DNA of 63,782 nucleotides, counting the filler, from Octopus bimaculoides (lineage: Eukaryota), in the NCBI RefSeq assembly GCF_001194135.2. It is 7 parts of 7 records of this genome, joined end to end, with 100 filler letters (N's around TTAATTAATTAA, not from the genome) between each part and the next. Parts side by side here need not be neighbours in the genome. Positions count along the whole stretch, not along the records: positions 1 to 12,559 come from NC_069010.1; 6 more parts are not named here. One strand, written 5' to 3'. The notes beneath the pieces are model-generated. The model did not search any database. It was given only the letters and a program-made list of their open reading frames with translations, and was not told the DNA's origin. The position numbers and the translations under genes were made by a program. Below, in pieces: positions 1 to 22,439 of this stretch (position 1 is the first letter of the stretch; every line of letters begins with the position of its first letter).

Positions 1-217
1 CAGTTCTCTCTGTATCTCTAGATGGGTTTCTTTGTCCTTTGTATAATAAAACATTGATAAAACACTTAAGCATTTCATTGAATGTATGAATTAGTATATT
101 GTGGGCCACAAGTACAACACTGTTGACTATTGTGACATATAATACATACGATATAATGGAATGTTTAGAAACAAAGCAAATAAAATTTGAATAAATGCGT
201 TAGAAACTTTTGCTTAC

Positions 218-270
218 CCACAATATTCAACTCTGAATGTTCCGGTTACGGTTAATAACTCATGCTCCAT
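218..270 (-). CDS. Internal exon continuing the post-Ly6 domain; gene continues left of the window
   Basis: Acceptor CGGCTTTTGCAG, donor GG|GTAAGC, 53 nt, phase 0 to 2. Reads MEHELLTVTGTFRVEYC(G); only the phase-0 frame is open, as the previous exon requires. Confidence 0.65.
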
Positions 271-367
271 CTGCAAAAGCCGGATGTGTATATATATATA
301 TATATATATGCATACATTAAATTCAAGAAACAAATTTGCTTTAGAAGCCTTGAGATATATTGAAAGA

Positions 368-717
368 TACAGATGAGGTAATAATTTAATTCTCAAACGC
401 TGGATAATGCTAATAATATAGCATGAACAGGATGAAATATCCATATTTTGCGGCTAGCTATGAGACTCAAACTCACATCCCTGTGATTACGCGTCAAGGG
501 CTTTACCATTAAGCTAAACTTCCCGAACGACAAATTCTACTGCAAATTTAAGGTATATAAATCTAGCTTTATAAGTCGCGTAACCACAGGGATGTGAGTT
601 CGAGTTTCATGACTGGTCACTGACAATTTTTTCTGCAAAATATCGATAGTTTTTATCCTGTTCATGCTATATCATTAACATCATCATGCGTTCGAGAATA
701 AAATTATTTTCTTATCT

Positions 718-720
<3 letters not shown>
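368..720. mobile_element. MITE/foldback element with long imperfect inverted arms
   Basis: Left arm (tacagatgag...catccctgtgattacgcg, ~368-493) is the reverse complement of ~577-720 (cgcgtaaccacagggatg...cttatctgta); TA at both ends. Confidence 0.7.
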
Positions 721-769
<49 letters not shown>

Positions 770-2129
770 NNNNNNNNNNTAAAATTTGAAGTGTAAATCA
801 TTAAAAAAAACGATAACAAGGAACAAGAGCATATGCGCATGGTATATATTAGCTCGACGCTCGATAAAGTGGGGGAAATAAGGGGGTCTTTAACGTTCCG
901 AACATAGCTCTTTGTCAGAAAGTAAAACAGAAAAGTAGAGACAATGAAAATATTACCAAATGTACGTGTGTAGTTACATATGTACATATGTGTGTGCGCG
1001 TGTCCGCGCGTACGTGTGTGTGTGTGTGTGTGTATGTATATTAATGTGTTTGTGTGTGTGTGTAAACACAAGATTAGTGAATAATGGGATTTTATTTACT
1101 GTCAGAATTGGAAATTATATCACGGAATATATAAATGATGTCGTTCATTTTGTGAACTTCATTTAAACAGAAAATAGTGGACAGAATAGTCTTTTCATTG
1201 ACCAGCAAAAATTCAGTGAGTTAGAAAAATTTCATTATGTAATAGTTTACTATCAGTAAATGGAGTTGATTGTCTAAATTTCATGAAACCCAAACACAAT
1301 TAATTCGCATTCTTAAAACTACGGTCTACTGCACGTTCATGTCTCAGTTAATTTACATGTCTGTATAAAAGTCTATATATACTTACATGCATACAAATTA
1401 TGAACATATGGATTGCATGAGATTGCCGAAGTTTAGTCCACTGCAGGACGAAGGTCTCATCATACTCTCTCTACCAACCCCTGTCTGATGTGGAGGCCGT
1501 TTTTACCTCGAGAGTATACTGGTTTGATGAGCCTAAGCAACCAAACTTGTTCAGCAAAAATTGGCAGTGGAGTACAGTCTGAAATACTCATACAGAGGTG
1601 CAGTAAAAACCCTCAAATTAACACAAGTGTTTAACTGGAACTCATTTTATCAACCTCGAAGGGATGAAAAGCAAAGTGGGCAGCGTAGAATTTGAACTCA
1701 AAACATAAAGAGGGATGAAATACCGCTAAGCATTTTTCCCGGCGTACAAACGATATTTCCAGCTCACCGCAGATTATGTAGGGAATTAAGTAATAAATAC
1801 ATACGCATATAATACTGATCTATATATTTGAATTTAACATGGATTTACATATGTATGTATTTATGTGTTTAAGCTGATCAGGTTAAACTTTAAAATACCT
1901 TTTATCATTTAACAAAATCGATATCACTATCTACTAAAGGCATTGAGCTCACTATTTATTTGACGTTTTCCATTTCTTCTATAAAACATGCACGTGTGCG
2001 TGTGTGTTTGTGCGTGTGTGTGTGTGTGCGTGAGTGTGTGTATGCATGTATGCGTGTGGTCAGTGCATGTGTGTGTTTGTGTTTGTGTGTGTGTGTGGAG
2101 AAATAGAGAAAGGTCAGATATCTACTCAC

Positions 2130-2212
2130 GGCTCTTGATACGCTTTCAGCAGGGATTGTATATTCGTTGAACTCTTTAAAAATCAAACGAAATACGAAGG
2201 AGTTGGTCCAGC
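2130..2212 (-). CDS. Internal exon downstream of the Ly6 domain (start of a Cys-poor domain, possibly SEA-like)
   Basis: Acceptor ATATCAATCCATAG, donor GCC|GTGAGT, 83 nt, phase 1 to 0, bridging the 5852 and 270 exons in frame. Reads (G)WTNSFVFRLIFKEFNEYTIPAESVSRA. Confidence 0.75.
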
Positions 2213-2469
2213 CTATGGATTGATATACAGAATAATCATTGCGTTTGTAAATGAGAAACACGTCATAGTTACACGTAAAACTCACATACGTAAACATAAA
2301 TGCACGTTCATGATCACATATACACTTCAAAATACTATATATATAAATATATGTAAAAACAACAACGCGTGGACGTGGTCCATGCATCCTATTACAGGAC
2401 GCTCAGGGAAGGAAAGTTTAACGTTTCGACAAAGCTATTCTTCAGAAAGAGTTAGCAGAAGAGGAAAGT

Positions 2470-2905
2470 CCAAGAGAAAAGGAAGACTGCCACTTTTCCA
2501 ATACTACCTTTATGTCACTCGTAGAGATAGCATTCCCCGTTACAATGTCCCCCTCTGCGGAACCAATCTATTCTGCCACATTCGAATGCTGCTGCTCCTG
2601 AAGCTGCAGGAATTTATTTGTCGTCAGCTCTTCTATGGGTTCTTCGACGAGATTGTTAATGTTTTCATCGTCAATGTTAATGTTTCCATCGAGGCCCATG
2701 GACTTGCCGAGAGACACTATCTCTTTAACTACATGCGCCTCAGATTCAAACCCCTCGAAGTCTCTTTCGCATTCGCAGTCAGGTCACAGCTTCCATCATG
2801 CAGAATTCAGCGTTCTCCTTGTTACACCCTGCCAGGCCATATCGATAATTTTCAAGCGGTTAACAATGTTGTAGAGCTCCTTCCAAAACTCACGAAGAGT
2901 TAGAT
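2470..2905 (-). mobile_element. Tigger/pogo-family transposase fragment (pseudogenised)
   Basis: Minus strand reads EFWKELYNIVNRLKIIDMAWQGVTRRTLNSA..KL..DCECERDFEGFE..VVKEIVSLGKSMGL...EELT with internal stops, typical of the Tigger C-terminal region. Confidence 0.75.
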
Positions 2906-3111
2906 TTGTATTTTCGGTGACGAAACTGGTTTTTGGTGTACAATTTCTTAATTTTAAAAATCACCTGTTGATTCATGGGCTGCATGGAAGTGGTGTTGGT
3001 GCGTGAAAGGTACAGAACTTTTATTAATTTTAATTCGTCCTGGATATCAGCACCGTGTCTAGGAAGGTGCTCCATTCCAATAGACGAACCGGTTTTACTT
3101 GTACTTGATTA

Positions 3112-3159
<48 letters not shown>

Positions 3160-3849
3160 CGCGTGTAGAACGTTGAAAAGTAACACACGAGTTGATATGT
3201 ATAGGGAAAATAAGACAAGGTAGAAAGTTCTAAAATAATTTTATCATGAAGAACATTTTAGTACCGGTTTCAGTCTTTGCAACTTTATCAAGTTTAGAGT
3301 AAAGCATGGGAAACAATTAAATTGTGGAAAAATTAAATGAATTTAAAAAAAAAAATATTTCCATAGTTTTCAAATACGTGGGACATTTTCCTTCTTTCTG
3401 TCTATCTCTGTCTCTTTTACTTTTNNNNNNNNNNNNNNNNNNNNNNNNNNNNNNNNNNNNNNNNNNNNNNNNNNNNNNNNNNNNNNNNNNNNNNNNNNNN
3501 NNNNNNNNNNNNNNNNNNNNNNNNNNNNNNNNNNNNNNNNNNNNNNNNNNNNNNNNNNNNNNNNNNNNGAAGAAGAAGAAGAAGAAGAAGAAGAAGAAGA
3601 AGAAGAAGAAGAAGAAGAAGGAAGAGGAGGAGAAGGAGGAGGAGGAGGAGGAGGAGGAGAAGAAGAAGAAGAAGAAGAAGAAGAAGAAGAAGAAGAAAAA
3701 GAAGAAGTAGAAGAAGAAGAAGAAGAAGAAGAAGAAGAAGAAGAAGAATACGTGCGTGGTATGACAGTCGTAGTTTGTTGTGGAATCCTCTTAAATTATC
3801 AATTGACCTAAAAGTAACCTGTTGTGTTTATAATAATAGTGATTAGAAT

Positions 3850-4950
3850 TCTCCTGAATAAATCCACAGGCAATGACAGTTCTTAATATATCGTTTTTAC
3901 TGTTTGTGTAGGTATTATTCTAAGGCGTTTGTAGTAGTGTCATTTGGGGTGGACGCATACAAAAGGGGTTTATATTTTGCGATACAATATGACTCTTTGC
4001 TAATGAGCTGACTACAAGTTGCATCGTCCCTGAATTTATAGAAGGAAAAATTCTGAGTTGGGTTGTTCATTAGTGGTGCAAATGTCAATGTGTTCACTGA
4101 ATGCTATTTTTTCTGTATTCCCGAATTTTAATCTGGGATCTGTGTAGGGTATTCATCTGGTGTAGACTATTTTGGGTTTGGCCTATGTATTGTTGTCGAC
4201 ACCCTGAGCAAGTTAATGCATATATTAGGTTTTCCGAAGCAAATGTGATGTTGTTTTTCACTGTAAATCATTGAATCTATTTGAAAGAGAACTCCTCTCC
4301 CTCAATTAGTTTCACGCATATGCCACAGTTAGGTCTCTTGCACTTTTTACTGACGGCTACAGTATGATGTTGAATGTACTTGATCTTGTATTATGAAACA
4401 TTTCATAGATTTTGGTTGTCTTTTGCTGTTTATGATGGTGTGCGCTTGGAGGATAAAATTCATTCTGTGATCCATTCTTAGTTGGTAAATGTTCTGGAGG
4501 ATTGTGTCGAAAGCTTTATTGTTAAGGGAGTTATGTATGGAGATGTATGATAGGGCTTTGGCTGTAAATCCTTCTTTAATTTGGCATGTCTGAGTTCGGG
4601 GATGTTGAGTTGTAGGGCACATTCAAAGCCTATATCAATTCGTGTCCCTGGTGTTTGTATTAGAGACTATAGTACAAATCCTTTTTGCTACGTTGAAGGG
4701 ATATTCACTCTAGAGTGTCTGGGGTGGCATGAGATAAACAGTAGATATTGCTTGGAGTCCGTGGGCTTATAATATATATCTGTTTTTATTTTGATGTTGT
4801 ATTTCTTAATGAGGATGTCGAGGAATGGAAGTTGTTGATGGCTATATTCCATCGTAAATTGAATGTTTATATCAAGTCCATTTATAAGAGCTTCAAATCC
4901 TTTAAATCTTTCTATACTTTCATGCCAAAGAATTATAGGAGTTGTCTCTG
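3850..4950 (-). mobile_element. Penelope-like element fragment (RT C-terminus to GIY-YIG region), degenerate
   Basis: INGLDINIQFTMEYSHQQLPFLDILIK...KTDIYYKPTDSKQYLLFISCHP is the PLE RT signature; frameshifts and stops downstream. Confidence 0.8.
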
Positions 4951-5581
4951 AAGACAAAGAAGCTATTCCCCAAGAGGACATTTAGCCCTTCTAATACGAA
5001 TTCGAATTCGTTTTTGATATATATATATATATAAACAAATAATAAATGAGTATATGCATATATACGTACAGGCATATGCATACCTACGTCCACCTGTATA
5101 TATAGGTGCATATCTGGGTACAAGACATTGCAAACAAAACGTAGACAAAAAAATAATAATAACCAGAGTACAGAAAACACACAAGCCACATAGAGAACAT
5201 TTTCTTTCATCAGCTACCCCCGTTTTAACACCGGCGTTTCGAAGAGTTGGGCAGGACGCATCGTTAAAACGGCTCTTCCCATGGACCACAAATTAAATTT
5301 GTATACACAAATTNNNNNNNNNNNNNNNNNNNNNNNNNNNNNNNNNNNNNNNNNNNNNNNNNNNNNNNNNNNNNNNNNNNNNNNNNNNNNNNNNNNNNNN
5401 NNNNNNNNNNNNNNNNNNNNNNNNNNNNNNNNNNNNNNNNNNNNNNNNNNNNNNNNNNNNNNNNNNNNNNNNNNNNNNNNNNNNNNNNNAGAGGCAGAAA
5501 CAAAGGGAGGAAGTAGAAGAATAAGTGAGCAATGAGAGAAAGAGAGGAAGAGAGGAATATAGTAGTAACAGAAGGAAGTAC

Positions 5582-5640
<59 letters not shown>

Positions 5641-5851
5641 AATGTATATATATATATATATACATTCAGATACGTATGTGTGTGTGTGCACGCCAGCATG
5701 TGCATACACACACACATATATATACACACATGCACACACGTATACACACATCAAACTATTTCCCTTATATTAACTATTATACAATGTTCTTATTAATTAT
5801 CAATTTGTAATAAATCTGATGGTGTTATATTAGACAATGAATAACACTTAC

Positions 5852-6035
5852 CTATGAAATCATTCTTGTTACATAAGTGTCCGACGCAACAACCAACACA
5901 AAACCTGCTTTTGGTCCATTTATTGCATGTAAGGGTATTGTTTCTCATAGCTTCAACACATTTTCTGTATGTGCTGCAAGACTTTTCAGTCTTCAGTTTA
6001 ACACCGTTCGTTGATAATGCCAATCGGCATACTGG
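5852..6035 (-). CDS. Internal exon: C-terminal half of Ly6/uPAR domain
   Basis: Acceptor TATTATTACAG, donor G|GTAAGT, 184 nt, phase 0 to 1. Reads PVCRLALSTNGVKLKTEKSCSTYRKCVEAMRNNTLTCNKWTKSRFCVGCCVGHLCNKNDFI, ending in the diagnostic CC-x4-CN motif. Confidence 0.9.
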
Positions 6036-8027
6036 CTGTAATAATAGATATCAAAATTATACACTACAACCAAAATATTTATTAGTACGATTATTGCTAA
6101 TTACAACAACAAAAACAACAGAAACAGCAACACTAGGGATGTTTACCTTGCAAGAAAGTTTAATCATTGCTTTAAAATATCCAAAAGCAATAAATGAAAC
6201 CGAAAACGACTTGGCGAATTGTTGAAAGTTAACAGCAGAGGTAAACTTTTGAAAAGTTTATTGCTATTTATCATTAAAAAATAATGTTTTGAATGCTTAG
6301 TATCCAAAGCCCTCTGATCAAATGTAGATATGGCCATCGGATACGGTCTATATGCAAACTACATCGCACTGTTACTCGTCGCCAAACTTAAAATAGGTCA
6401 AATTAGCCCAATAAAAATGTATAAATTCGCCAATTTTTTTTCTTACTGGAGGAATGCACAAGAGGAATTATTCATATAAAATTTACGAAAGATCACGCGT
6501 GTAAAACTCACCAACAACAGAAACTAATATGCCCCTACCCAAAGATGATAATGAAATAAAATTGTCAGATTGAACTCCTCAGTCCAAGCAAATAAAACAG
6601 AAAATACATAAAATGAACACAAGAGAAACTTCGTTTTATTTTGCATGTATAACGTATATGAAAATACGATATACTAGTATAAAAATTGGAGAGATAATAG
6701 CCAAGATCTAACTGTATCATCGGACCCCCAACAGAGTTGTTAACTTAATAAGGGACATTCTGAAAACGAAAAATATCAGAAGTGGAGAAGAATATTTAAA
6801 GAAAAGAATCCATCACCAAAACGCAATTGATAATCGCAAACACCTAACAACAATAAAAACAATGAAAATGTAGATATTGAAGTTAGAAATAAGATGTGTT
6901 GTGCCTTAATTTGAAATTGAAACTCGTTTCGTTCAATCTCCAAAAATTTTTAGAAAGAAAATTGGATTTCTCAAACTGAGTGAGGATGTCATGAAAAAAT
7001 AACCAATGATAGTGTCGGTAGACTGGCGTCTTAAAAAAAGGCAATGGAGTCGGTGATTGCAAATGAATGAATCTTTAAATAAGCTAACTCAGCTTCAAGA
7101 AAACAGAAAGAATTGAAAGCAGGACAGACAATAAAACAGACAACAGAATGCAGCCATGCTCTTATGTCACGCTCTATTCTCCTATATTCTCGTATATCAG
7201 ATTATGTGAAGCATTGATCTGTGTTATTACCGGTGTCTTTGTTTCTCTTGTGTTTCTTTAACCAATGTACAACTGTGTATTCAGAGATATGCCTGACAAT
7301 TTTAATTTGCGTTTTAGCTGCGTTTAATCGTATAGCTTTCACCTTTTCCAGTTGAAATAATATTACCCCCATCCATTATGTTCTGGAGAACTTATACTTT
7401 TTGATGTGAGGGAAGATTTAATCCGTTTCGAACATTTCATAACCTTGTCTATCAAACAACCTCTTTTGCTATGGCCACCATACGAAGGAAAACTGTCATT
7501 TGCTTCTTAACTTATTCATTAATCAGCTCCCTGTAATCTCTGCGAGCTGGTAGAGCAACGACCGACTTCCAGTTACCCCCTCTAAGACTAGTGACTCGAG
7601 GTCATTCTGCAAAGAACTTTGATTCCAAGATGACTCCTGGCCACAATCATTCATACATCCTACTCTAATGACAGCCATGTTTGTCGGAGAAAGGTCACTC
7701 TAAGTTCGTGTGTTCGTTTCTTGAATAGGGATTCCTGGACAGGGTAGAACGCTGTGTCCTTGAACAAGGCACTTCATTTCCCTTTGTTCCAGTCCAATCA
7801 AGTGAAATGTGTCCCAGCCTAGTGATGTTCATCTATTCCCCTCTTCAATCGTCACATCCTTGTTGTCCCATTGAGTCGTGAATAAGAAGACCGATAGGGT
7901 CTGTATGTCTACGCAGGCACATAAAAATAAACTAGCGAAAGCATAGTACAATGTGGTCTTAATGGTTTTCGAGTGACGGCTGTCGATATATTTTAACGGA
8001 AAGGAAGAAAGTAATATTCCAGTTTAC

Positions 8028-8119
8028 CTCTGATCCTGGACAGCTTTCCACTTCTGAATCATTGCACATCATTCCTGAACATGTTTGACACTGTAAATTC
8101 CTTTGAAATAACGAGTAAT
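8028..8119 (-). CDS. Internal exon: N-terminal half of Ly6/uPAR (three-finger) domain
   Basis: Acceptor CTTGTATTCTGTAG, donor GAG|GTAAAC, 92 nt, phase 1 to 0, matching both neighbours. Reads (N)YSLFQRNLQCQTCSGMMCNDSEVESCPGSE, with the L-x-C-x-x-C LU-domain start. Confidence 0.85.
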
Positions 8120-8339
8120 CTACAGAATACAAGTAAATATCTGTATTTATAAAACAAATAATGCAATGCATAGCAATAACAGGAAATATTGTCTTTCTGA
8201 TGTAAAAGAATTAATACGTGTTTGCAATGGAATCAATACATGTTAGACATATAAACCAAATTATTAACAAAGACTATAAAACTATTTTTATGTTCATTTG
8301 GAAATGTTTCAATTGTCACAAATTCAACTGAGAGAAGCA

Positions 8340-9050
8340 TGAAAGCTACTTCGCCTTTTAGTATTCTGATGTACTTGACAGTATTTTCTGGGTTTTCACA
8401 TAAATAGCTCGGATCTCATCAGGCGTCCAATAAAACAGCCCAAATGTTAGTATGAGTACTTGCTCAGAAAACACGTTGTGGGCCAATGTTTCATTGAATG
8501 CATAGATTTCTGAGGTCCAAATTTTATTTATTGAGCTGTAATGTTCTTTGTTTATACTGTAATGACACCTGTAACTTAATGGCACCTGTAACACAATGGC
8601 ACCTGTAAAAAAACACTTGTTTTGTTACAGGTGCTGTTGTGAGATATATTTTCATCCACTCCTAGATATCTGTAACATTCCTCTTCAGATATAGGGGAAA
8701 CAGTCATTGATGGTGATGTTGCTAGTCTGGTTTACAGTTTTACCCCTTTTCACAACCATATAACATTTATCCTGAACAATCTCCAAACCTACATTTTTTG
8801 AGAATGTTGTAACTTGGTCGGGGCTCTTTTTCATCTCATCCATATTCTTTGCATAAAGTTTTAAGTTATCCACACAGAAACAGTGTTCAATTTTGGTATT
8901 TCTGTTTCCTTGTGAACCAATGAGATATCCCTAACATGAATGACATGGGGTTTACAGAAAGTATAAACAATATCACAACGAGGTTGTCCCCTTGGAATAT
9001 GCCTTTGCGATATTGTATTCTGTCAGTGATAATAGTTACTCTTTGTGTTT
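8340..9050 (-). mobile_element. R4/NeSL-like (RLE-type) LINE fragment
   Basis: KLYAKNMDEMKKSPDQVTTFSKNVGLEIVQDKCY...YRYLGVDENI, then INKIWTSEIYAFNETLAHNVF...TFGLFYW: RT and thumb region with stops. Confidence 0.75.
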
Positions 9051-10265
9051 AATTTCATGATGGTGGCCCACAATGAAATCAGGTCAGCTATGGCTTTGAT
9101 TATGCTCACTAGAAATTAAGTAACTTGAAGGGCTTCTAGCATCCATGAGTATGTATGTGTGTATGGATGTAAGTATGTATGTACGTATGTATGTACGTAT
9201 GTATGCATGTATGTATGTATGTATGTATGTCCGTATGTGAAAATGTGTGAATGAATGTGTCCGCGTGTGTACATACATATACATACTGACACGTATATTT
9301 TCTTGAGTGATGTGCTTAATCGAACCCCATTTTACTTCTGTCATTTGGAACCTTCGCTGTTTATGCCGGAGTCTTCTCTGTTGTAAACAATCAAGGCATG
9401 TCTTTGATTTCAGGATATCTTCCTACTTTCCTCCAACCAATCACAGCAGCCTTTGGAATGATCATGAGCATTGACCGTCTTCCTGGTTAAGCGCTAAAAA
9501 TATACTTTACCTCTCTACTTCGTTTGCTTCCTCTCTCCTCCGTAGCATCACTCTTACCGACCCACATCCACACATTAATTGTCCCTACGCCAACATTTAC
9601 ACTTTATGCAAACTTCACACGCTAGACCACAGTTTCTACCTACATATCTCATTTTGGTAGCACAGTTACTCTCTTCACACTTTATTACACACTCACACAC
9701 ACAACTTTGTCCCTGCTTTGCTTTGTATCTATAAATCACTCACTTCTCTCTCCTCCTCCTCCATTTACCAATCACTACTGCTTGGCTGCTACTAACTGAA
9801 ACAGTTTACCTCCCATATACGCACACATACCGCAACCTTCTTCTCTCTCTTTCCATTCATGTTCACTCTTCTTCGAATAAAACCACTTTTGCTCTTCTCT
9901 CCTTCTTTCGGCAGCCATTTTCTGTCTCTCACTTAACACATGTGTACAAACCCTTTGCTTGTACCGTCTACATTATTTGACCTTCATGAAGTGTGCCATC
10001 ATCTTCAGACATTTTACGTTACTGAATTGCCTGCATTTTGCCGTTTTTATCTTGTCTTGGTATTTGATCTTCTGAAGCAACTTTTCTCTCGTATTCGAGT
10101 TTTATCCTATAGATTCTGCTGCAACTGTCCATGTCACATCTTGCTGCCTTTACAGTGTTCACAGAGCATTGAACAGCAGTGAAGGCGTCTGAATTTTGGT
10201 AACCGTCATGAATTATGATGAATACAGGTAACTCTTTTCCAATATTTAGATGGCTTTCAATGCAG

Positions 10266-10465
10266 CAAGCTGGCAGAAACGTTAGCACGCCGGGCGCAAT
10301 GCCTAGCAGTATTTCGTCTGTCTTTACGTTCTGAGTTCAAATTCCGCCGAGGTCGTCTTTGCTTTTCATCCTTTCGGGATATCAGTTGCGTACTGAGGTC
10401 GATATAACTGACTGGCCCCCTCCCCAAACATTTCGGGCCTTGTGCCTAGAGTAGAAAAGAATATT
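10266..10465 (+). mobile_element. tRNA-derived SINE, family B (gagctggcagaaacgttagcacgccgggc...)
   Basis: Repeats across the window: ~1612-1770(-), 14168-14405(+), 16676-16848(-), 22093-22320(+), 40709-40905(+), 47674-47975(+), 50428-50640(+) and fragments. B-box-like GAGTTCAAATTCC. Confidence 0.8.
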
Positions 10466-11715
10466 TACATGGCTTCCAATCCGCCATATCAGCTTTTTCT
10501 CAGCTACAAATTTATATTTATACTCTCCAATACCTTTCACTGTTTACCAATGCACTAAGTTTTCCTTAATATAATGGGACATAAAATCGTTATATTTAAT
10601 ACCGACACTCTTTATATATCCATCCTTCTACCATCTTCAACGCTCATTATTCCTGGGATGGTCATGAGGACATCTGGTGCCTCGGGTACCTCCTGCATAG
10701 GGTCCTATCAGAAGCAACTGCCAGTACACTTATTGATTGAATGCTCAAGCATGACCAACGGAGGCTATGAATATTTTATAGCCATCCCTTTCTGGTCTAC
10801 CCCTTCATTCCCTGATGTTTTGCATCATTTTAAAGAATCGATCTTGCGATTTTCTCATGTGACATCCTAATCGCATGTCCGTATTACCGGAAGTGTAATG
10901 GCACAATAAGGAAAAGTACCGACTCGATCTGGAGAGACTCCGTCATCTCCAATGTACACACTGTGTCGCGTAAAATTACTCCAGTTTTTTTGGAGGAGTC
11001 CCTTTTCGGCCGCTTCTATTTGCGATCAGACTCTTTCAGTCGTTAGCTAACATTCATGACCATAGGTGATGATGGGCACGAAAACCAAACTGAAGATTGT
11101 GTGTTTGGCTGAGGATCGAATGCTGGAACATTTTTTGTATCTCGGGAGGGTCATTAAGCCAATAATATACACACGTACTGGTTCTAGTTCACTTTATTAT
11201 TCGTCACTTTGTTAACAATTTGTTAACGAATTAACTAAATGAATGTTTGATTATCCGTTTGGTAAACCTATCAACCAGTTATGGTTGTTAGCGACTTTTT
11301 GTTGTCATTCGTAACCGCTTCAATGACTCATTTGTTTTTGTTCTATGCTTATGTAGTTCTGAGTGAGAATGTACGTGAAAGAGAGGGTTAGAGAGTATGT
11401 CTGTGAGCATATGTGTGAGTACATGGAAGTGTACATTCATCCATGTGTACGCTGTTGTGAATACTTGCATATGTATGTTTGTGTGTGTGTGCACGTGTGT
11501 GTGTGCCGTTGATGGTGTGTGTGATACAGTTGAATGTATAAGTTCATTAGAGAGAAGATGTGAATGTAAAGCGTGCGAATGCTAAAACGTTTATTTCGCA
11601 TATCTTTATCTATAGTTTCCGTTTCATAAGACATTATATTGTAAGCTTCAGAGAAGAACCCGTATTTTCTTAGTGTTAATAATAAAAGAAAAGAAGAAAC
11701 GAGAATTTTACTAAC

Positions 11716-11873
11716 TTTGACATTGCGTATAATTCAGTATAGGTATTTGTTCCTCTGAACTTTCCAGACACGTGCCATAGACATTCACAGTTCTGTTATA
11801 GACTTTTTTAACATGATTTACGAAGGCTGGCAAGTGACATCCACACCGCATAAGGTTATTATGTCGGAGATAG
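11716..11873 (-). CDS. Internal exon of LRR-Ly6/uPAR extracellular protein: end of last LRR plus LRR C-terminal cap
   Basis: Acceptor TCTTTATTGTTACAG, donor A|GTTAGT, 158 nt, phase 2 to 1. Reads (x)YLRHNNLMRCGCHLPAFVNHVKKVYNRTVNVYGTCLESSEEQIPILNYTQCQ: LxLxxN motif, then the four-Cys cap pattern CxC-x22-C-x15-C. Confidence 0.85.
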
Positions 11874-12480
11874 CTGTAACAATAAAGAGAACTCTGAATG
11901 CGTTTCAGATCAACAGAGAAATTCCTATGTGATTTGACAAGAAACAAAGATTATGAATTTTGAGCAGGTATATAAACGTTATGAAATTCATTTTTCTAAG
12001 TGTTGTTAATAACATCAATAATGTGAAATGCTTTCTAGTAGAAAGTGGGAGCATTAAGGTTCTATTCTCTTTTAGCTTACATATTGAATAATAAAGTACC
12101 TTTAAATAAGATTACTAGCCACTTGAAACGGTTCTATTTTACCGTAGTTTAGGGACACTGTAGAGTCGGGAATTTGGTGGTAGGGATCTTGCGCTTCTGT
12201 ATCTGAGAAAACTCATTCAGATCGGTGGTTTTGGCGCTAAGAAGGTCGAGTTTATTCTATGTAGCAATTGGTTTTAAAGCTAGAGACGTACCAGCGCAGA
12301 AACTGACAGATTACAGTGTTGTACATTTTATAGCTTCAGTGGCACAGACATGTATAGTAATATTCCTAATTAAGAAGGGGAAAATTAATATTCATTTTTG
12401 ATATATCAATTTGAATATTTTCAGTGTTTTTCAAAAAAGAGCAACAGCAAAACCTCATCAACAACAACAACAACAACATC

Positions 12481-12555
<75 letters not shown>

Positions 12556-12559
12556 AAGA

Positions 12560-14017: not shown

Positions 14018-14499
14018 GCTGCCGATGCTGCCGATGCTGATCTGGCTAGCTACGGTTTCAATGTTCATGCTAATTTTGTATTTTTAACGTTGTTGTTGTT
14101 GTTACTGCTGCTGCTGCAGTTTCAATGACTGTGTTGTTCTTGTAGTCTTAATGTCTCTATTAGAACCAAGCTGCGAGCTGGCAGAATCGTTAGNNNNNNN
14201 NNNNNNNNNNNNNNNNNNNNNNNNNNNNNNNNNNNCCCCCGGGTAGAACGCTGTAGATCCTAAGTTCAAATTACGCGGGTGGTCAGTTTTGTTTTTTATT
14301 CTTTCCGGGTCGATAAAAATAAGTACCAGTAAAACATTGGGGTCGATGTAATCGACTTATCCCCTACTACAAAATTTCAGGCCTTGTGCCTATAATTGAA
14401 ATGATTATTACTAGTCTGAATCAAAGGTTTTTCGGATTTTCACTGATGATTTGGTGCACCTTATATCGCCGTGTTACTTACCCAATCATTGTCAAACAA

Positions 14500-14960
14500 G
14501 GGCGATTTGAATGAGGTCATGTAGTGTGTTTGGCGGATTTGGGGCTTGACCCAGACGGTCATGCTGTGAACGCTAACCTTTATGCTCAACAACTGCAACG
14601 AAGACATGATGCTTTGAAAGCCCGCTGCCCGACATTGGTCAATCAAAGACGCGCACTCCTACAGCATGGCAACGCCCCATCACACACTACCAATGTGACC
14701 AAGAACAAACTTGAAGAACTCGAGGTGCTGGAAGTGCTGTCTCACTCTGCCTATAGTCCAGGCCTTAGATCATTAGATTACTACCTTTTCCAAACCATGA
14801 CTCATTTCTTGCACGGAGGAAGGTTCAACAAAGTGGATGAGGTTGAAAACGGGTGCAGGCAGTTTTTGTGTCTAACCAACCAAATAATATAAGCGTTGAA
14901 TTGAGCTTCTGGCACAACGATGGCAACAGACAGTAGAATATTATGGGATATGTTTTTGAT
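14500..14960 (+). mobile_element. Mariner transposase fragment inside ZP intron
   Basis: VNANLYAQQLQR...LLQHGNAPSHT...LEVLSHSAYSPGLRSLDYYLF is a degenerate form of the mariner HDNA and YSPDLAP-DY motifs. Confidence 0.85.
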
Positions 14961-15417
14961 GAATAAATGTTTTTGTGCGTAATTCGTTTAAACTATTAAA
15001 GCTTGACATACGAAAAATCTTTTGACTTGACCTGACAATGCTGTAGCAGTTGTAATTCTTGAAGTTGTCAATATTGGTTAGGCTGTTGTTGTTATTGTTG
15101 TAGATACTATTAGAGCCTACTCTCAAGAAATATGGTAATGCTTGTAAATGTATCTCTATAGAATTTTGCATTGCTCTAGGCAAAGAATACGCAAATCATA
15201 TTTATTTGAAAATTTTCAACCATTATGAATAATTATGACCATGATGGAACAATATGGCGAAATAAGAGGAATGGGGGAAAGAAAGAGGAGAAGGGAGAGA
15301 AAAGGTTGAAGAAGAAGAAATATTTCTTCCTTCTTTCCTTTAAAGATTTTGCACTCTTCTTCTCGTTGTTCTTGTCTAACACTCTCCTCATTTCACTCTC
15401 CCTCTCTTTCTCTCTCT

Positions 15418-15477
<60 letters not shown>

Positions 15478-15805
15478 TACACACAATCACAAGATGGTTC
15501 TTTCTTTTTAGCTAAAAGAAGCCATCATTTATTCATTCTTTATTCAAATAACGACAAAGATGTTTCGACAAATACACCAATCTATTTTTCCCAATTTCTC
15601 CTTCTCATTTCTTTATGCAAGATTTCCAAGCAGCTGCTACAAAACTCCATTTCACAATATACTTCCAACAAATTACAACAAAATTATGAATGATTGATTC
15701 AGTTTTATTTTGTAACATTGTCAAAATATTAACTATTTTCTTCAAAATTTCACAATTAGATTTTTCCTGGATGATTTTAATGTACAATTTTATGTTTGTT
15801 TCCAG

Positions 15806-15910
15806 TCACATTGTACAGAAAGCGAGTTGAGCAGACGACGGCGAAGCAATAGCGGTAAACAAGCAGCTTACATTACTTTGACGACGATTCTGCAGGTCAA
15901 AACAGATTAA
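15806..15910 (+). CDS. Terminal exon of ZP protein: last Cys, furin site, external hydrophobic patch, stop
   Basis: Acceptor TTTGTTTCCAG, phase 0, 35 codons: SHCTESELSRRRRSNSGKQAAYITLTTILQVKTD*. RRRR consensus furin site; AATAAA follows the stop at 15915. Confidence 0.85.
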   Translation, partial: SHCTESELSRRRRSNSGKQAAYITLTTILQVKTD

Positions 15911-15914
15911 ATTG

Positions 15915-15920
15915 AATAAA
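15915..15920 (+). promoter_or_regulatory. Polyadenylation signal of ZP gene (candidate)
   Basis: AATAAA beginning 5 nt after the TAA stop. Confidence 0.5.
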
Positions 15921-16906
15921 AGTTATACTTCTATGATGTTTTCTAGTTTGGGGATTTCAAGCAAGCGTTTTACTTTCCATTCTTTTCTTTTCTTTTCCCA
16001 AAAACAAATTCAGAAAGACTTATTCATCATGTTCAAGAAGGCAACAGGCTTTTTCCATTAGCTATATGTAAATAGAAACACTCGTACACATGTATACATA
16101 TGTATACTTATAAATACGTGTATGTATATGAATACACACACGCACATATGAATCTACCTATGCATACATGAATCTACATATGTGGGGGGGGGAGGTATGT
16201 GTGTAGAATATATTTAAACGAGATGCTAGATAATTTTATATGAAATAACTTGCTTTTAGAGTAAGCAGTTGGAGACACACATACACATACATACTAAATA
16301 TATATCGTTGCTATTATGTTAAACTGTCGTATATCCAAATTTGTCCAAATGCGTTTCTTTTTCAATATTTATTTTTGCTTGCGATACCCGGTTCTTTTGG
16401 TCCAAGCTCTCGTATCTCCAGCAACTTAAAACGCTTAGACATCTCAAAACTGTCAAAGTGTAGTACAACGGTTTCGTTATGAAATCGTGAAACTATTTTT
16501 TAAAAATTTTTTGAAAAAGCAACGATGTGTGTGTGTATGTGTGTGTATACAGAAACACACATAGACGTTGGGGGCTAGATAGGTAGAAAGATTGATAGAT
16601 AGATAGATATATTTACATATATATTGATATCTGTAAGAATGCGTGTTTGTATGAATGTATGTATATATGTATTTGTGTTATTTCTTTACTACCCACAAGG
16701 GGCTACACACAGAGGGGACAAACAAGGACAGACAAACGGATTAAGTCGATTATATCTACCCCAGTGCGTAACTGGTACTTATTTAATCGACCCCGAAAGG
16801 ATGAAAGGCAAAGTCGACCTCAGCGGAATTTGAACTCAGAACGTAACATACAATTCAAGCCTCTTTCGCTTGTATTTACATAAATTCTTTACTGGCCAGT
16901 AAATTA

Positions 16907-17396
16907 CCGTAAATCCTCGAGTATAGTCCGCCCTTGAGTATGATATGCAGGGGATTTTTAGGGGGCTGTACCTCTGAAAAACCTAAACCTTGTGCATAAT
17001 ACGCATCCCTTCTCTAACTTGAGTCAAGGAGGTCTATATAACGTCCTTGGTTTGTGAACGTATATACGGTAACGTCCTTTATTATTATTGCATATATAAC
17101 ATAATGCAAACGTGTAGCTTTTTTGTGCACTTTGTTTGCAAAAAATAAAGAAATAACAGTAATAACGTCAGTGAAAAATAAATATTAAGTAAATTGCCTT
17201 TCACATATTTATCACTATCAGTTACAAGCCTGACATCACAAAATGCGTCTGAATAAACATTGCCGGACAGCAATTAGAGACTCGGACATTGCTTAGAAAA
17301 TATTTTTTCATTCTTAACCTCGTATATAGTACGCACTAGGGATTTTGACCTTTAAATTTTGGGGAAAAAGTGCGTATTATACTCGAGGATTTACGG
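16907..17396. mobile_element. Non-autonomous Tc1/mariner-superfamily element (MITE)
   Basis: TIRs CCGTAAATCCTCGAGTATA / TATACTCGAGGATTTACGG, each flanked by TA. Confidence 0.85.
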
Positions 17397-20356
17397 TATT
17401 TCCTTCAGAAAATACAATCAAATTTAAGCAGACGCACTTCGCCGAACTTGAACAAACCTAATGACACCAAATCAAGCAGAACAATGTCTTTCTTATCTTT
17501 CTCTGCCTATGCACCACCCTATATACGCATGCATTCTTTTTCTTTCTGCTCTCCTCTTCATCTGCTCTTTCTTATTCTATTACTTCTCTCTTCCCACACG
17601 TCATTATTTCTGGTCACTCGATTAAACTATGTATCAATGTTTCTTCAGGTGCTACAAAATATATTATTAAACTTCATCGACACTGCAGCAACTATTACCC
17701 ACCTAAGACGTGAATCAAAGCACATAAAATTCTTTGTAAACCAAAAAATGACTTTACAGTTGGACGTAGGCAATTGAGTCAAATGATCAGCAATCACTTG
17801 TCAGGCTTTACTTTGAAAAATTTCTAAAAATAAGCCATAAAAGATTTTCTGGCTAAACTCAAATGAGTACTCCACGATCCAGTTCTCAAATTATGTTCGA
17901 GTGCAAACAAATGCACCAGTAGGAATTTTTAAGTATCTGATGTTGAAAAACATCAGCATCTAGAGCGTATTCATTTTTTTTTTTAATGCGGCTATGATCC
18001 CCTAATTTTAATTTCACTTACACTGTTTTTTGTATATTGTTTATATTCTGAACTTAACTGTTTCTGTATCATTCTAAACTTTTCACAGACATCATGGCAC
18101 CAAAAAGACTTAGTTTTCTCTAATAATTGTTTAAACAACCATGAATCTTCACTTCTGGCCTCTACGATTCGTTCGTTATATACCTGAGGAGGAATTTCGT
18201 TATCGTTTACAAGTGTTTCTCCTCACCTGCTGCCATTGTTTAATATTGTTGTTTTTCAATGATTTTATTTCCTTTAGTGTTTTCATCTGTTGTTCTTTCT
18301 TCCTTGTTGGTTCTGTTGGAGGAGAGGTGAGTGTAATTGTTCATCTATTTGTGATATTAAGCCTACAGATACTTCCTTTGCTTTCCTCAGCGCTTTGGCT
18401 TTGATGTCTGGAAACTAGTGTTTGTTATTCTTTTTTGATACCGTCCTTTATTATTTTCGTTTTCATTGTTTTTGTTTAATATTCCCAGTTTTCCGGATAT
18501 CCGGTTCTAAATGTGCGCTTTATTCCGACAAATACAACTCGGCTTTCTTCCATCTTTCATCAGTCTGATACTCTTAGTCTCTGGTGTTTTCTACTGGATA
18601 TGGTTCTTGCATTGCTCTTGCAAGATTTTTCAGTATTCATTAAGACTTGCAAGAATATTTTCTTCAATTAATCCTTCACCAACTCTTTTCATTTTCATTT
18701 TCCCCTTGAACATTTAGTAGTATTTTCATTTCGCGTTGTTTTTTTAGCCATCGTACTGGTTTGTCCTGTGGCAGCCATTTTGAAAGCAGAGGTGTTGTGT
18801 ACGTAAGTACAGTTTTTAAAATTTGTCAAACAAACCTGTTTTTTAATGTTGCCTACCTCCACGAGTGGCGAAGGCAGCTCCTCCATAGATAATTATAATC
18901 GTTTTGACAAGTAGTTCTTAAACATTTGTTTGTTTGTTTTGTTTTGTCCTTCTTTCATTTTTTTTTTTAATACTTGAAACAAATCAAGTTTTGAAGGGGA
19001 AGTAAAAGAAAAAAGACATCTCCATACCTCGAGAGTCAATAACAACATTAACAACAGCATAAATGACAAGTAAACAACTAAATAAGTGACAATAAAAATA
19101 TAAAATATAATTTTATGTGAGAATATAGATTAAATGAGTTATTTCTTTATAAATCGTGTTTCTGTAATGTCTGTAGCAGCACTTAAATAGAAACTGGACT
19201 TAAAACTAAATTTAAGATAAGATTGCCATCTATATAACATTCTTAATGCATATGTGCAGTTGAAACGCCAGAAGTTACGGATTTTCATCGAGAAAAATCC
19301 CGTTATAGACGTATTGTGTTAAAAAAACACAATATATTTCAAAACTAGACGGAACGAAAGCACCTCGGAAGTGACCGTGTGATAGAAAACTACGTATTTC
19401 GTTGTGGTTGCGGCTTGTCAGTGTCACATGATTGGGACATATCCGAAACAAAAATAAATCAGCGATTCTGAGGTATAAATATGTAGCGCATAACCTACAC
19501 ACTGGTATACAAAAGGTGTTGCATGAGTAAATGACCGCTTATGAGGTTCCCATGAGTCATATGTATTAAGTATCGGCTTCGGGAAGATCTTTCTTCTGTT
19601 TCTTTTTTTTTTTTACTATACAGATAATTACATTGCAGAATTCAAATAACAAGTATTAATCACGTGTGCATCAGCGTCTCTTCTATTCGTCTTTTACCGG
19701 CTTCATACACACACANNNNNNNNNNNNNNNNNNNNNNNNNNNNNNNNNNNNNNNNNNNNTTAATTAATTAANNNNNNNNNNNNNNNNNNNNNNNNNNNNN
19801 NNNNNNNNNNNNNNNTATATATATATATATATATATATATGAATGAGTAGACAAATGAAAGAAAGGCACTCAACCAATTTATTGGGAGTTATATGTAAGG
19901 ATCAAAATAGTTAGATTCAAATTCGTTGGTACTCTTGAGTTTCAAGCATGATATTAGTCATCAGCCATTTTGAATTAGAATGATAGAAGCTGATTGTTAT
20001 TACCATAAGGTGAGCTGTGATTGGTCGAGGAAGGTGATGTGGTGTCATGGTTTGATGTTGGTATATGGGTAACAGTTAGTTGAAAAATACCACATGGTGA
20101 ATAGGAAATCAACAAGGAATAGAGCACATGGCGATTAGGAAATTGGTCAGGTTGTGGGGGTGAAATAGGAAGGGGTGGCACGTGTAAGTATATAGTTCTA
20201 TGAGTGGGTGTGTTGATGTGTTCATATGGTTTTGCATGCATGTGTGTATTGATGCGAGCGTATGTATCTGTACATGTGCATCTGTACATGGGCAAATTCA
20301 AAATGGCTGACAACTAGCATCACACTTGAAATTCAATTTGAATCAAACAGTTTTGA

Positions 20357-20399
<43 letters not shown>

Positions 20400-21141
20400 N
20401 NNNNNNNNNNNNNNNNNNNNNNNNNNNNNNNNNNNNNNNNNNNNNNNNNNNNNNNNNNNNNNNNNNNNNNNNNNNNNNNNNNNNNNNNNNNNNNNNNNNN
20501 NNNNNNNNNNNNNNNNNNNNNNNNNNNNNNNNNNNNNNNNNNNNNNNNNNNNNNNNNNNNNNNNNNNNNNNNNNNNNNNNNNNNNNNNNNNNNNNNNNNN
20601 NNNNNNNNNNNNNNNNNNNNNNNNNNNNNNNNNNNNNNNNNNNNNNNNNNNNNNNNNNNNNNNNNNNNNNNNNNNNNNNNNNNNNNNNNNNNNNNNNNNN
20701 NNNNNNNNNNNNNNNNNNNNNNNNNNNNNNNNNNNNNNNNNNNNNNNNNNNNNNNNNNNNNNNNNNNNNNNNNNNNNNNNNNNNNNNNNNNNNNNNNNNN
20801 NNNNNNNNNNNNNNNNNNNNNNNNNNNNNNNNNNNNNNNNNNNNNNNNNNNNNNNNNNNNNNNNNNNNNNNNNNNNNNNNNNNNNNNNNNNNNNNNNNNN
20901 NNNNNNNNNNNNNNNNNNNNNNNNNNNNNNNNNNNNNNNNNNNNNNNNNNNNNNNNNNNNNNNNNNNNNNNNNNNNNNNNNNNNNNNNNNNNNNNNNNNN
21001 NNNNNNNNNNNNNNNNNNNNNGGATTTATTCTTTGTAAGTCTAGTACTTATAGCATCAGTTTCTATTGCCAAACCGCTAAGTTACGGGGGCTGTAAACAC
21101 ACCAACATTGGTTGTCAAGCAATGGTGGGGGTGACAAACAT

Positions 21142-21177
<36 letters not shown>

Positions 21178-22439
21178 GACAAGCTTCTTTCAGTTTCCAT
21201 CTACCAAATCAACTTACAAGGCTTTGGTTGGCTCGAGACTATAGTAGAAGACACCTGCCCAAGATGCCACTCAATGAGACTAAACCCAGAGCCATGTAGT
21301 TGGGAAGCAAACTTCTAACCACTCACCCACTCCTGTGCCTACATGACACATTGGTGCACATGCAACCATAGAGGCACATGACACTTACACACCACAACCT
21401 CCACACACCTATGCCCACATATGTACCTTACAATTACTTTTAATCTGCAGACTTACAAGAGTTATACAAGGACCAAGAGGTTCATGCACAACACTTATGA
21501 AACCTATGTACCTTCATGTATAAACACACAACAAGGAAAAAGTATGTTCTGATGCAGAACTCAGCTGCTCTCTGGAGATCAATGGGATTAGAAGAATACA
21601 GGGGAAAGAAAACATCTGTGGATTATTGATAAGAAGTTTGCTAATCCAGCACCTAGCACACACTTTCAGTTTCAAACCTGTTATTATTGGAGCAACAGGG
21701 TACGTATCAACCAGTCTGGAGCAAAGTACAGCTTGTGGGGGGGGGGGGGNNNNNNNNNNNNNNNNNNNNNNNNNNNNNNNNNNNNNNNNNGGGGGGGGGG
21801 GGTGAATGCAACTCCTTTATCCATACACTACAAATGATCACAATATCTGGAACAATAAAAATCTTTAAGACCTGCTGAAGATTTAAAGGATGATGAATAA
21901 AACAAAGTGTTTTCCTTCACAATCTGGCTGCCAAGCTGGTGGCCAGGTCAAAAGTAGCTGCAAATTAAAAGCAGAAAATGAAAACATACATTCATTCATG
22001 CATACATGCATACATACATGCATACATGTATGCATATATACATACATACATGCATACATACATATATGCATACACACACACATACATACACGCCGCTACG
22101 TTCTGAGTTCAAATTCCGCCGAGGTCGACTTTGCCTTTCATCCTTTCGGGGTCAATTAAATAAGTACCAGTTATGCACTGGGGTCGGTATAATCAACTTA
22201 ATCCNNNNNNNNNNTAAGTACCAGTTATGCACTGGGGTCGGTATAATCAACTTAATCCGTTTGTCTGTCCTTGTTTGTCCCCTCTGTGTGTAGCCCCTTC
22301 TGGGTAGTAAAGAAATAACACATACATACACGCATACATGCATACATACACACATATACATACATCCACACATACATACATACATACAAGCATACATACA
22401 TACATACATACATACATACATACATACACTGACAAGTAC

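Follow-up and report, generated by a model that had tools for sequence, protein, structure and literature searches.

A five-exon block with a Lynx2-type Ly6/uPAR domain in octopus DNA, probably part of an LRR-type adhesion receptor gene

The stretch of octopus DNA considered here (the window; 63,782 nt, filler included) carries, in the 12.5-kb piece that forms its first part (positions 1-12559, from NC_069010.1), five exons on the minus strand, which we refer to as E1 to E5; all coordinates count along the whole stretch. Spliced together, these exons encode the end of a leucine-rich repeat (LRR) block with its cap, a Ly6/uPAR (LU) domain and the beginning of a SEA-like domain. An earlier note on this DNA, made from the sequence alone, had read them as a secreted or surface recognition protein of unrecognised architecture. 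Comparison with related octopus proteins leads us to a different reading: E1-E5 very probably form an internal block of a multi-exon gene, one of an octopus-specific expansion of LRR-type adhesion G-protein-coupled receptors (GPCRs). To judge by its relatives, the locus would continue into hormone-receptor motif (HRM), GAIN and seven-transmembrane (7TM) parts outside the window.

The exon block and its relatives

The five exons join into 570 nt that encode 190 residues free of stop codons; the central domain has 12 Cys. Canonical signals occur at all ten splice sites, the AG acceptors being accompanied by a polypyrimidine tract and the donors across the five exons reading GTTAGT, GTAAAC, GTAAGT, GTGAGT and GTAAGC. 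The exon model of the earlier note (five GT-AG exons in exact phase without a stop) therefore stands as it was given (Table 1). The spliced peptide, with exon boundaries marked by slashes, is (I)YLRHNNLMRCGCHLPAFV...YTQCQ / NYSLFQRNLQCQTCSGMMCNDSEVESCPGSE / PVCRL...CVGCCVGHLCNKNDFIG / WTNSFVFRLIFKEFNEYTIPAESVSRA / MEHELLTVTGTFRVEYCG. At its junctions (QCQ|NYS, GSE|PVC, FIG|WTN and SRA|MEH) the sequence runs on without interruption in many paralog proteins and in the transcript-derived relative P0079 (P numbers designate individual family members).

Table 1. Exons and introns of the block, in the order of transcription.
Feature	Positions	Strand	Length (nt)	Phase in/out	Content and remarks
E1	11873-11716	(-)	158	2/1	Last half LRR (I)YLRHNNL and predicted LRRCT cap with 4 Cys (CGC...C...C), ending ...YTQCQ; basis: splice sites and frame, homology to paralogs with Pfam LRR_8 upstream, cap profile A6
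E1/E2 intron	8120-11715	(-)	3596		Reverse-transcriptase-like fragment and a copy resembling a short interspersed element (SINE)
E2	8119-8028	(-)	92	1/0	Linker NYSLFQRN and the LU domain's N-terminal portion with Cys 1-4 and loop I (LQCQTCSGMMCNDSEVESCPGSE)
E2/E3 intron	6036-8027	(-)	1992		
E3	6035-5852	(-)	184	0/1	Remaining LU domain (PVCRL...CVGCCVGHLCNKNDFIG; Cys 5-12, loops II and III, CCxxxxCN end motif)
E3/E4 intron	2213-5851	(-)	3639		Assembly gaps 3425-3568 (by (GAA)n) and 5314-5489 (by TA/TG runs); decayed transposon reading frames
E4	2212-2130	(-)	83	1/0	First part of the SEA-like domain, with strand 1 and the beginning of helix 1 (WTNSFVFRLIFKEFNEYTIPAESVSRA)
E4/E5 intron	271-2129	(-)	1859		Assembly gap 770-779 by a (CA)n run; 70-nt inverted-repeat element
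E5	270-218	(-)	53	0/2	SEA-like domain continued: rest of helix 1, then strand 2 (MEHELLTVTGTFRVEYCG)

At its 5' end the block begins within the LRR region. No LRR exon came up in 11874-12559 when LRR-bearing paralogs were searched by tblastn, and the half-repeat at the start of E1 is the only LRR sequence in the 12.5-kb piece. A candidate upstream exon at 12152-12256 (minus-strand open reading frame (ORF) NKLDLLSAKTTDLNEF...) was rejected, since it resembles no LRR exon of any paralog and its donor is poor. Similarly, a plus-strand ORF of 254 residues (2139-2900) was rejected as a gene: it overlaps E4 in antisense as well as decayed transposon remnants, and is otherwise unsupported. Directly upstream of the E1 acceptor (11874-11950, minus strand) no stop interrupts the frame over 26 intronic codons (…HRNFSVDLKRIQSSLYCYS|YLRH…), and a homologous intron-derived peptide (NFSVDLKRIQSSLYYYS) occurs in the O. 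vulgaris model P0041; read-through in the annotation is the likeliest cause, more so than a genuine alternative acceptor. At the 3' end, the SEA-like domain and the gene run on past the window edge after E5. In the paralogs this continuation reads ...SxxxKIFxIYCxV...LNxSQxL... and is followed by HRM and GAIN.

A search with the 190-residue peptide matched 17 proteins, all of them from O. sinensis, O. bimaculoides or O. vulgaris, and the cephalopod lineage proposed by the earlier note agrees with these Octopus-only matches. The top match covers the full 190 residues at 78% identity (E 2.8e-114). Across the family, identity to the window peptide over its whole length ranges from 35 to 78%, and over 122 residues it reaches 93% in P0003, the product of LOC106873717 in O. 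bimaculoides. No deposited protein is identical to the window copy. To the earlier note the protein had looked unannotated; its relatives are annotated, as fragmented models under misleading names (slit-like, decorin-like, chaoptin). A search of the whole library with a profile that kept about 60 LRR positions was flooded by LRR proteins and is informative for the top ~25 family members only, not for the range outside Octopus. A homolog search with a profile of the LU domain alone returned four family members, all already known.

Collinearity with the O. bimaculoides locus L001 (CM046630.1:586118-622491, LOC106873717) extends over exons and introns of the 12.5-kb piece, at 86-96% nucleotide identity, most of the aligned sequence being intron. 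The exons are 95.9% identical to L001, and E2 shows 100% nucleotide identity to the orthologous exon. All eight comparable splice sites are conserved, while the E1 acceptor falls in a gap of L001. Over 169 codons, the Nei-Gojobori method counts 7 synonymous and 14 non-synonymous changes, with a synonymous divergence (dS) of 0.073 and a non-synonymous/synonymous divergence ratio (dN/dS) of 0.48. Taken together, the homology, the exon identity, the conserved splice sites and the dN/dS indicate a coding block that is conserved, fast-evolving and probably functional. Its source is a close relative of O. bimaculoides or else a very recent paralog. L001 itself is interrupted by 13 runs of N in 36 kb, one of which deletes half of E1, and the O. 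bimaculoides gene model is truncated for this reason. It also contains about 7 kb within the E3/E4 intron (L001 ~14255-21376) that are absent from the 12.5-kb piece.

Domains of the encoded ectodomain

The LU domain of the window spans 88 residues, from LQCQTC to CCVGHLCN, and fits the LxCxxC start and CCxxxxCN end of such domains, which form four disulfides from eight core Cys within ~70-90 residues; its 12 Cys are invariant (12 of 12) across 17 family members. A Pfam scan of the 190-residue peptide, a check which the earlier note had proposed, gave nothing at E <= 10, and a phmmer search of the same peptide against PDB sequences gave nothing either; family profiles were needed, and these recover the LU domain. 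Profile A3, which covers the 88-residue LU region, was compared with 177,635 PDB sequences and obtained nine matches at E <= 10, all nine of them three-finger proteins. They comprise LYPD1/Lynx2 (6zss; E 5e-4, aligned end to end with 12 of 12 Cys), the ectodomain of ACVR1, LYPD6, SLURP-1, Lynx1 and snake toxins. The threshold of the curated Pfam models of the LU clan (UPAR_LY6, UPAR_LY6_2, Toxin_TOLIP, Activin_recp and CD59) is reached by none of the 17 members. Sub-threshold matches among these 17 are to Activin_recp in seven (best E 6e-4), to Toxin_TOLIP and UPAR_LY6_2 in three each, and to CD59 in one. One family fragment carries the RefSeq name 'ly6/PLAUR domain-containing protein 1-like'.

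Structures were predicted with AlphaFold2 (AF2) for the paralogs P0001 and P0010, in place of the window peptide. For P0001 (16 sequences), the predicted local distance difference test (pLDDT) stays below 50 in the LU region, which is thus uninformative, and Foldseek returned generic ferredoxin-like matches only. The model of P0010, which is 65% identical to the window and rests on a 26-sequence alignment, reaches a pLDDT of 67-88 in the LU domain and consists of four long strands followed by a helix and then a fifth strand. Foldseek aligns 85 of its 86 residues with the nuclear magnetic resonance structure of Lynx2 (6zss) at a probability of 1.00, a TM-score of 0.66 and a root-mean-square deviation of 3.5 Å (E 0.03). 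The three-finger fold is thereby borne out on a paralog model, and together with the invariant Cys and the exclusively three-finger PDB matches it upholds the LU assignment of the earlier note. We regard the identification of the central domain as a Lynx2/LYPD1-type 12-Cys three-finger domain as supported.

In Lynx2 and Lypd6 six disulfides have been described, four of them in the core and a further one each in loops I and III, and in Lynx2 a long helix extends from loop III into the head (Paramonov et al. 2020, PMC7582953). The octopus domain resembles human LYPD1/Lynx2 (6zss) and Lypd6 in the LxCxxC and CCxxxxCN motifs, in 12 Cys at equivalent positions and in the helix from loop III to the head, at a sequence identity to Lynx2 of only ~21%. 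The Lynx2 alignment and the published map would pair its cysteines as C1-C5, C2-C3, C4-C6, C7-C10, C8-C9 and C11-C12. The 12 Cys, which the earlier note had considered unusual, thus mark the known Lynx2/Lypd6 subtype and not a new extra disulfide, because the human proteins have exactly the six-disulfide pattern predicted here. What differs is the context: human Lynx2 is a small, single-domain modulator of nicotinic receptors anchored by glycosylphosphatidylinositol (GPI), whereas the octopus LU domain sits inside a large ectodomain composed of several domains.

Upstream of the LU domain, E1 shows a cap pattern CxC...C...C directly after LxxNxL (YLRHNNLMRCGCHLPAFV...GTC...YTQC), whose Cys are invariant in 12 members, and in paralogs a Pfam LRR_8 match lies immediately upstream of this cap. 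The cap profile A6 gave 31 matches in the PDB, 30 of which are LRR proteins aligned at their C-terminal cap, with LGI1, Slit, TLR3/5 and FLRT3 matched across the entire cap; E is no better than 0.014. Pfam LRRCT had no match in the window peptide or in the paralogs scanned. The case that E1 encodes an LRRCT cap is weak but coherent. Of the LRR and LRR cap claimed by the earlier note, the cap thus holds, by its four-Cys pattern, while the LRR proper lies outside the 12.5-kb piece and only the last half-repeat within it.

Downstream of the LU domain more ectodomain follows, as the earlier note had stated, and of this SEA-like domain no more than the initial ~46 residues are encoded in the 12.5-kb piece. 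The paralog models predict a beta-alpha-beta-beta-alpha-beta fold with high confidence (P0001 residues 181-271, pLDDT 74-90; P0010 residues 110-206, pLDDT ~77-96), and the residues equivalent to E4 form a strand followed by a helix (pLDDT 74-92). SEA domains, which are alpha/beta sandwiches of ~100-120 residues, have this topology. In position the domain corresponds to the SEA domain of ADGRG6, which stands just before HormR-GAIN. Pfam SEA (PF01390) matches the most divergent member, P0079, only (E 0.007, a score of 16.9 bits with the cut-off at 26.4, covering positions 3-100 of the 106 in the profile). Profile A5 of the SEA-like domain found noise only in the PDB, and its hhalign comparison with the SEA domain of MUC1 returned a probability of 0.2%. 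The 50 best Foldseek matches have generic ferredoxin-like folds, none at E <= 1e-3 and with no solved SEA structure among the top matches; the SEA-containing zebrafish Gpr126 ectodomain appears only as a weak match at rank 39, for the P0001 model. An autoproteolysis motif of the G|SVVV type is not present at the turn between strands 2 and 3; this turn has S, L, M or A after EYCG and lies between two conserved Cys (EYC... and ...IYC). The G|SVVV motif occurs in many, not all, SEA domains. The SEA-like call of the earlier note therefore keeps the predicted fold in its favour, set against a single sub-threshold Pfam match, the missing motif and the want of a solved SEA counterpart. We retain 'SEA-like' as a reasonable label, supported only at the fold level, with membership not demonstrated.

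An octopus receptor family

The paralogs show how such a block may be completed. Their architecture comprises a signal peptide, LRRNT, a variable number of LRRs, LRRCT, LU, SEA-like, HRM, GAIN/GPS (with HL|T) and 7tm_2, with an additional Death domain in one member. Upstream of the region shared with the window, Pfam LRR_8 is matched down to E 2e-97. Downstream of it, the pattern CxE.T..N..F.WP...G....I.C...ATR.C corresponds to a sub-threshold Pfam HRM (E 6e-4) and precedes GAIN (PF26588 GAIN_ADGRA3, PF01825 GPS) and 7tm_2. Both GPS and 7tm_2 are found in P0046, P0053, P0065 and P0079, GPS alone in P0041 and P0052, and 7tm_2 without a GPS match in P0043. The whole architecture is present in one molecule in P0079, an uninterrupted, intronless ORF of 1155 residues on a 4.2-kb contig of an RNA-type assembly (SRR21372857). 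Other full-length members are P0065/P0183 (XP_014773211, 'adhesion GPCR A3', ADGRA3), P0053 (XP_052827273, 'adhesion GPCR G6', ADGRG6) and P0046, which is named 'GPR126-like' (a RefSeq example of this name being XP_014788728 of O. bimaculoides) and ends in the Death domain. The GPS motif CxCxHLT.F occurs in six distinct members (P0046, P0052, P0053, P0065, P0079 and P0213). The cleavage site with the hydrophobic tethered-agonist sequence reads CSCNHLTSFALLMDV in P0053, CECIHLTNFALLMDI in P0079 and CSCDHLTSFALLMDV in P0213. Among solved structures, the GAIN/7TM half of P0079 is closest to ADGRG6, G2 and G4, also L3 (E to 4e-66), and not to ADGRA.

The relatives closest to the window peptide that extend further are P0041 (76.7% identity), which reaches the GPS and the first transmembrane helices, P0040 (75.3%), which reaches the start of GAIN, and P0043 (70.9%), which includes HRM and 7tm_2. 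Family genes are clustered on chromosomes, and at one O. bimaculoides locus (L004) three adjacent models on the same strand contain LRR, LU and SEA-like (P0010), and GAIN_ADGRA3, GPS and 7tm_2, respectively; these three look like one receptor gene split by annotation. In P0046/P0187 (O. bimaculoides LOC106882527) the cytoplasmic Death domain follows the 7TM part (P0046 residues ~1203-1277, Pfam E 3e-6) and is preceded by a long low-complexity (QSTS)n tail. Predicted isoforms of O. sinensis near P0047 (XP_036355612-XP_036355623) and P0039 measure 337, 361, 385 and 409, and 477, 501 and 525 residues, and these steps of 24 residues are whole LRR units, pointing to LRR exons of cassette type or to collapsed tandem repeats.

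Several observations weigh against the assignment of E1-E5 to a complete receptor gene. For this locus no HRM, GAIN or 7TM exon can be seen, as the 12.5-kb piece ends 217 nt after E5, and none was found within 10 kb downstream of the ortholog in O. bimaculoides, a stretch of which about 40% consists of N. The dN/dS of 0.48 indicates moderate constraint only, and the support for the exon junctions comes from paralog proteins and P0079. P0041 (O. vulgaris CAJ1099246) has a degenerate GPS (CSCDRLKSF against CSCDHLTSF) and a 7TM part broken off into transposon-like sequence, and represents a copy that cannot be cleaved or is decaying, unless the model is mis-assembled. Finally, P0038, P0042, P0012, P0014 and P0015 end without a 7TM part at ...TGNGTEDRAAETNF, so that soluble members may exist. 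These five models, from two species, have in common a ...SSSTGNGTEDRAAETNF tail after a shortened second SEA-like repeat, without GAIN or 7TM, and may represent a soluble branch or isoform of the family.

Such models lend some credit to the view that the locus encodes a stand-alone recognition protein of LRR, LU and SEA-like parts, secreted or membrane-anchored, which lacks the 7TM part through C-terminal loss or alternative termination. Indeed, many gene models in three Octopus species consist of LRR, LRRCT, LU or SEA-like parts only, some with the shared non-transmembrane end just mentioned, the orthologous O. bimaculoides model P0003 counts only 122 residues, and GAIN and 7TM were not met within 10 kb downstream of it. 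However, short models are largely products of assembly gaps, as the 13 runs of N and the half-deleted E1 of L001 illustrate, and the models at L004 carry LRR, LU with SEA-like, and GAIN with 7TM head to tail on one strand. The closest further-extending relatives, P0040, P0041 and P0043, reach GAIN, GPS or transmembrane sequence. Moreover, P0003 stops at the E5 donor and P0001 soon after a partial second SEA-like repeat, with no transmembrane or GPI signal visible, so that neither looks like the true end of a protein. The stand-alone protein envisaged by the earlier note is thus unlikely, longer paralogs carrying GAIN, GPS and 7TM.

We consider it just as improbable that E1-E5 are a pseudogene fragment, i.e. 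a decaying partial duplicate, from which no protein is made, in a fast-duplicating, transposon-rich cluster. The family arose by recent tandem expansion and includes many partial copies, among them P0041 with its broken GPS and truncated 7TM part, the introns are filled with repeats, and the dN/dS of the exons is not strongly purifying. By contrast, all five exons are open, the 12 LU and four cap Cys are intact, and of the ten canonical splice signals the eight comparable ones are conserved in L001 at a dS of 0.073. The exons (95.9%) are also better conserved than most of the intron sequence, and dN/dS lies below 1.

If E1-E5 belong to a full adhesion receptor, the large N-terminal fragment would be its ligand- or adhesion-binding arm, by analogy with other receptors of this kind, with the LRR solenoid and the LU domain as protein-binding modules; for the LU domain, a role as putative protein-binding site is plausible. 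The SEA-like and HRM domains would serve as a stalk. The GAIN domain would cleave itself at HL|T, as expected from the family, and once the N-terminal fragment was pulled or removed, the tethered agonist (TSFALLMD...) would be exposed and would activate the 7TM part and its G protein.

Relation to known receptors and the role of the LU domain

A receptor expansion of this kind has been described before. Ritschard et al. 2019 (PMC6408891) defined as 'group 3' an octopus-specific class-B expansion with LRR, GPS and 7TM and a single Death member, the receptors of which are co-localised, under positive selection and, in their expression, enriched in axial nerve cord, suckers and skin. The paralogs of the window peptide are directly homologous to 'group 3' (PMC6408891), with the same module order of LRR, GPS and 7tm_2 and with Death in one member, just as the paper describes. 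The architecture that the earlier note did not recognise therefore falls in these octopus-expanded adhesion GPCRs, which RefSeq names ADGRA3, ADGRG6 or GPR126-like, and its reading is borne out only in part. The locus adds one copy to a family that is already known and annotated, and is not a new kind of protein. The difference lies in what has been named: both PMC6408891 and the database annotation list LRR, GPS, 7TM and Death only and leave the LU and SEA-like modules unnamed, these modules, between LRR cap and HRM, lying below Pfam detection.

Among other adhesion GPCRs, ADGRA2/ADGRA3 (GPR124/GPR125) likewise have an N-terminal LRR block with LRRCT followed by HRM, GAIN and 7TM, and the octopus paralogs match PF26588 GAIN_ADGRA3. 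In vertebrate ADGRA, an Ig domain is located between cap and HRM. The octopus family instead has LU and SEA-like domains at this place: no Pfam match to an Ig domain was obtained in the window peptide or in the paralogs scanned, where LRRCT is followed by LU and then usually by the SEA-like domain. ADGRG6 (GPR126), on the other hand, agrees with the membrane-proximal half in its order of SEA, HormR, GAIN and 7TM, and provides the best GAIN/7TM sequence match (E 4e-66), although the relationship of the octopus domain to SEA is not significant by sequence. The N-terminus of ADGRG6 consists of CUB and pentraxin (PTX) domains, and it is not known to include an LRR or an LU domain.

The new element is therefore the recognition of a Lynx2-type LU and a SEA-like domain in the ectodomains of these receptors, where Pfam and InterPro had missed them. 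No adhesion GPCR with an LU domain came up in the literature searched, and an LU module inside such a receptor appears to be undescribed. A practical consequence concerns annotation: Octopus gene sets split these genes into slit-, decorin- and chaoptin-like pieces, which inflates gene counts and hides the architecture.

LU domains are modulators of nicotinic receptors and of other surface receptors. A 2026 preprint claims that a free LU protein, Bero, acts on the GPCR AstC-R2. Together with the positive selection and tissue enrichment of 'group 3', such modulators provide a testable idea on what the expanded ectodomains bind. A bolder extension of this idea, which we raise only as a long shot, is that the receptor-borne Lynx2-type LU domain might be a functional 'prototoxin' module that either binds proteins of the nicotinic-receptor family or acts as a covalently tethered cis-ligand or regulator of its own 7TM part. 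Octopus suckers possess chemotactile receptors derived from nicotinic receptors, which would be possible nicotinic-family targets in the first version. Should the idea prove true in either version, it would link a three-finger modulator to G-protein signalling in a new way and give a candidate for a part in the touch-taste sense of octopus.

The introns of the block are rich in repeats. All three assembly gaps are intronic and none touches an exon. The first is bridged by a single BLAST alignment to L001 (window 302-2282), the flanks of the second are 137 nt apart in L001, and the third coincides with a run of N in L001 too. Since more than 10 paralog protein alignments and the transcript-derived relative show zero residues between the equivalents of E3 and E4, no hidden exon is expected in the E3/E4 intron. 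A long microsatellite adjoins each gap and the right edge of the 12.5-kb piece, namely (CA)n at 721-769, (GAA)n with GAG variants at 3569-3750, (TA)n(TG)n at 5580-5760 and (AAT)n(GAA)n at 12480-12559, and these microsatellites probably caused the assembly breaks.

Besides microsatellites, one short interspersed repeat is present in two copies in opposite orientations (1688-1771 and 10261-10344; 77% identity), with more copies in L001 (e.g. ~4100-4220); ARAGORN detected no tRNA in these SINE-like copies. Decayed transposon ORFs, all on the minus strand, lie at 8688-9048, 2571-2960 and 4097-4981, the last having a retroelement-like look without Pfam support. Among the intronic ORFs, one piece resembles reverse transcriptase (Pfam RVT_1, E 0.003, sub-threshold) and another the end of a DDE_1 transposase (E 0.062). 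Finally, the E4/E5 intron includes a palindromic element similar to miniature inverted-repeat transposable elements, with 70-nt arms (368-437 and 651-720) that are 84% complementary and 213 nt apart, and this region aligns to L001 in both orientations.

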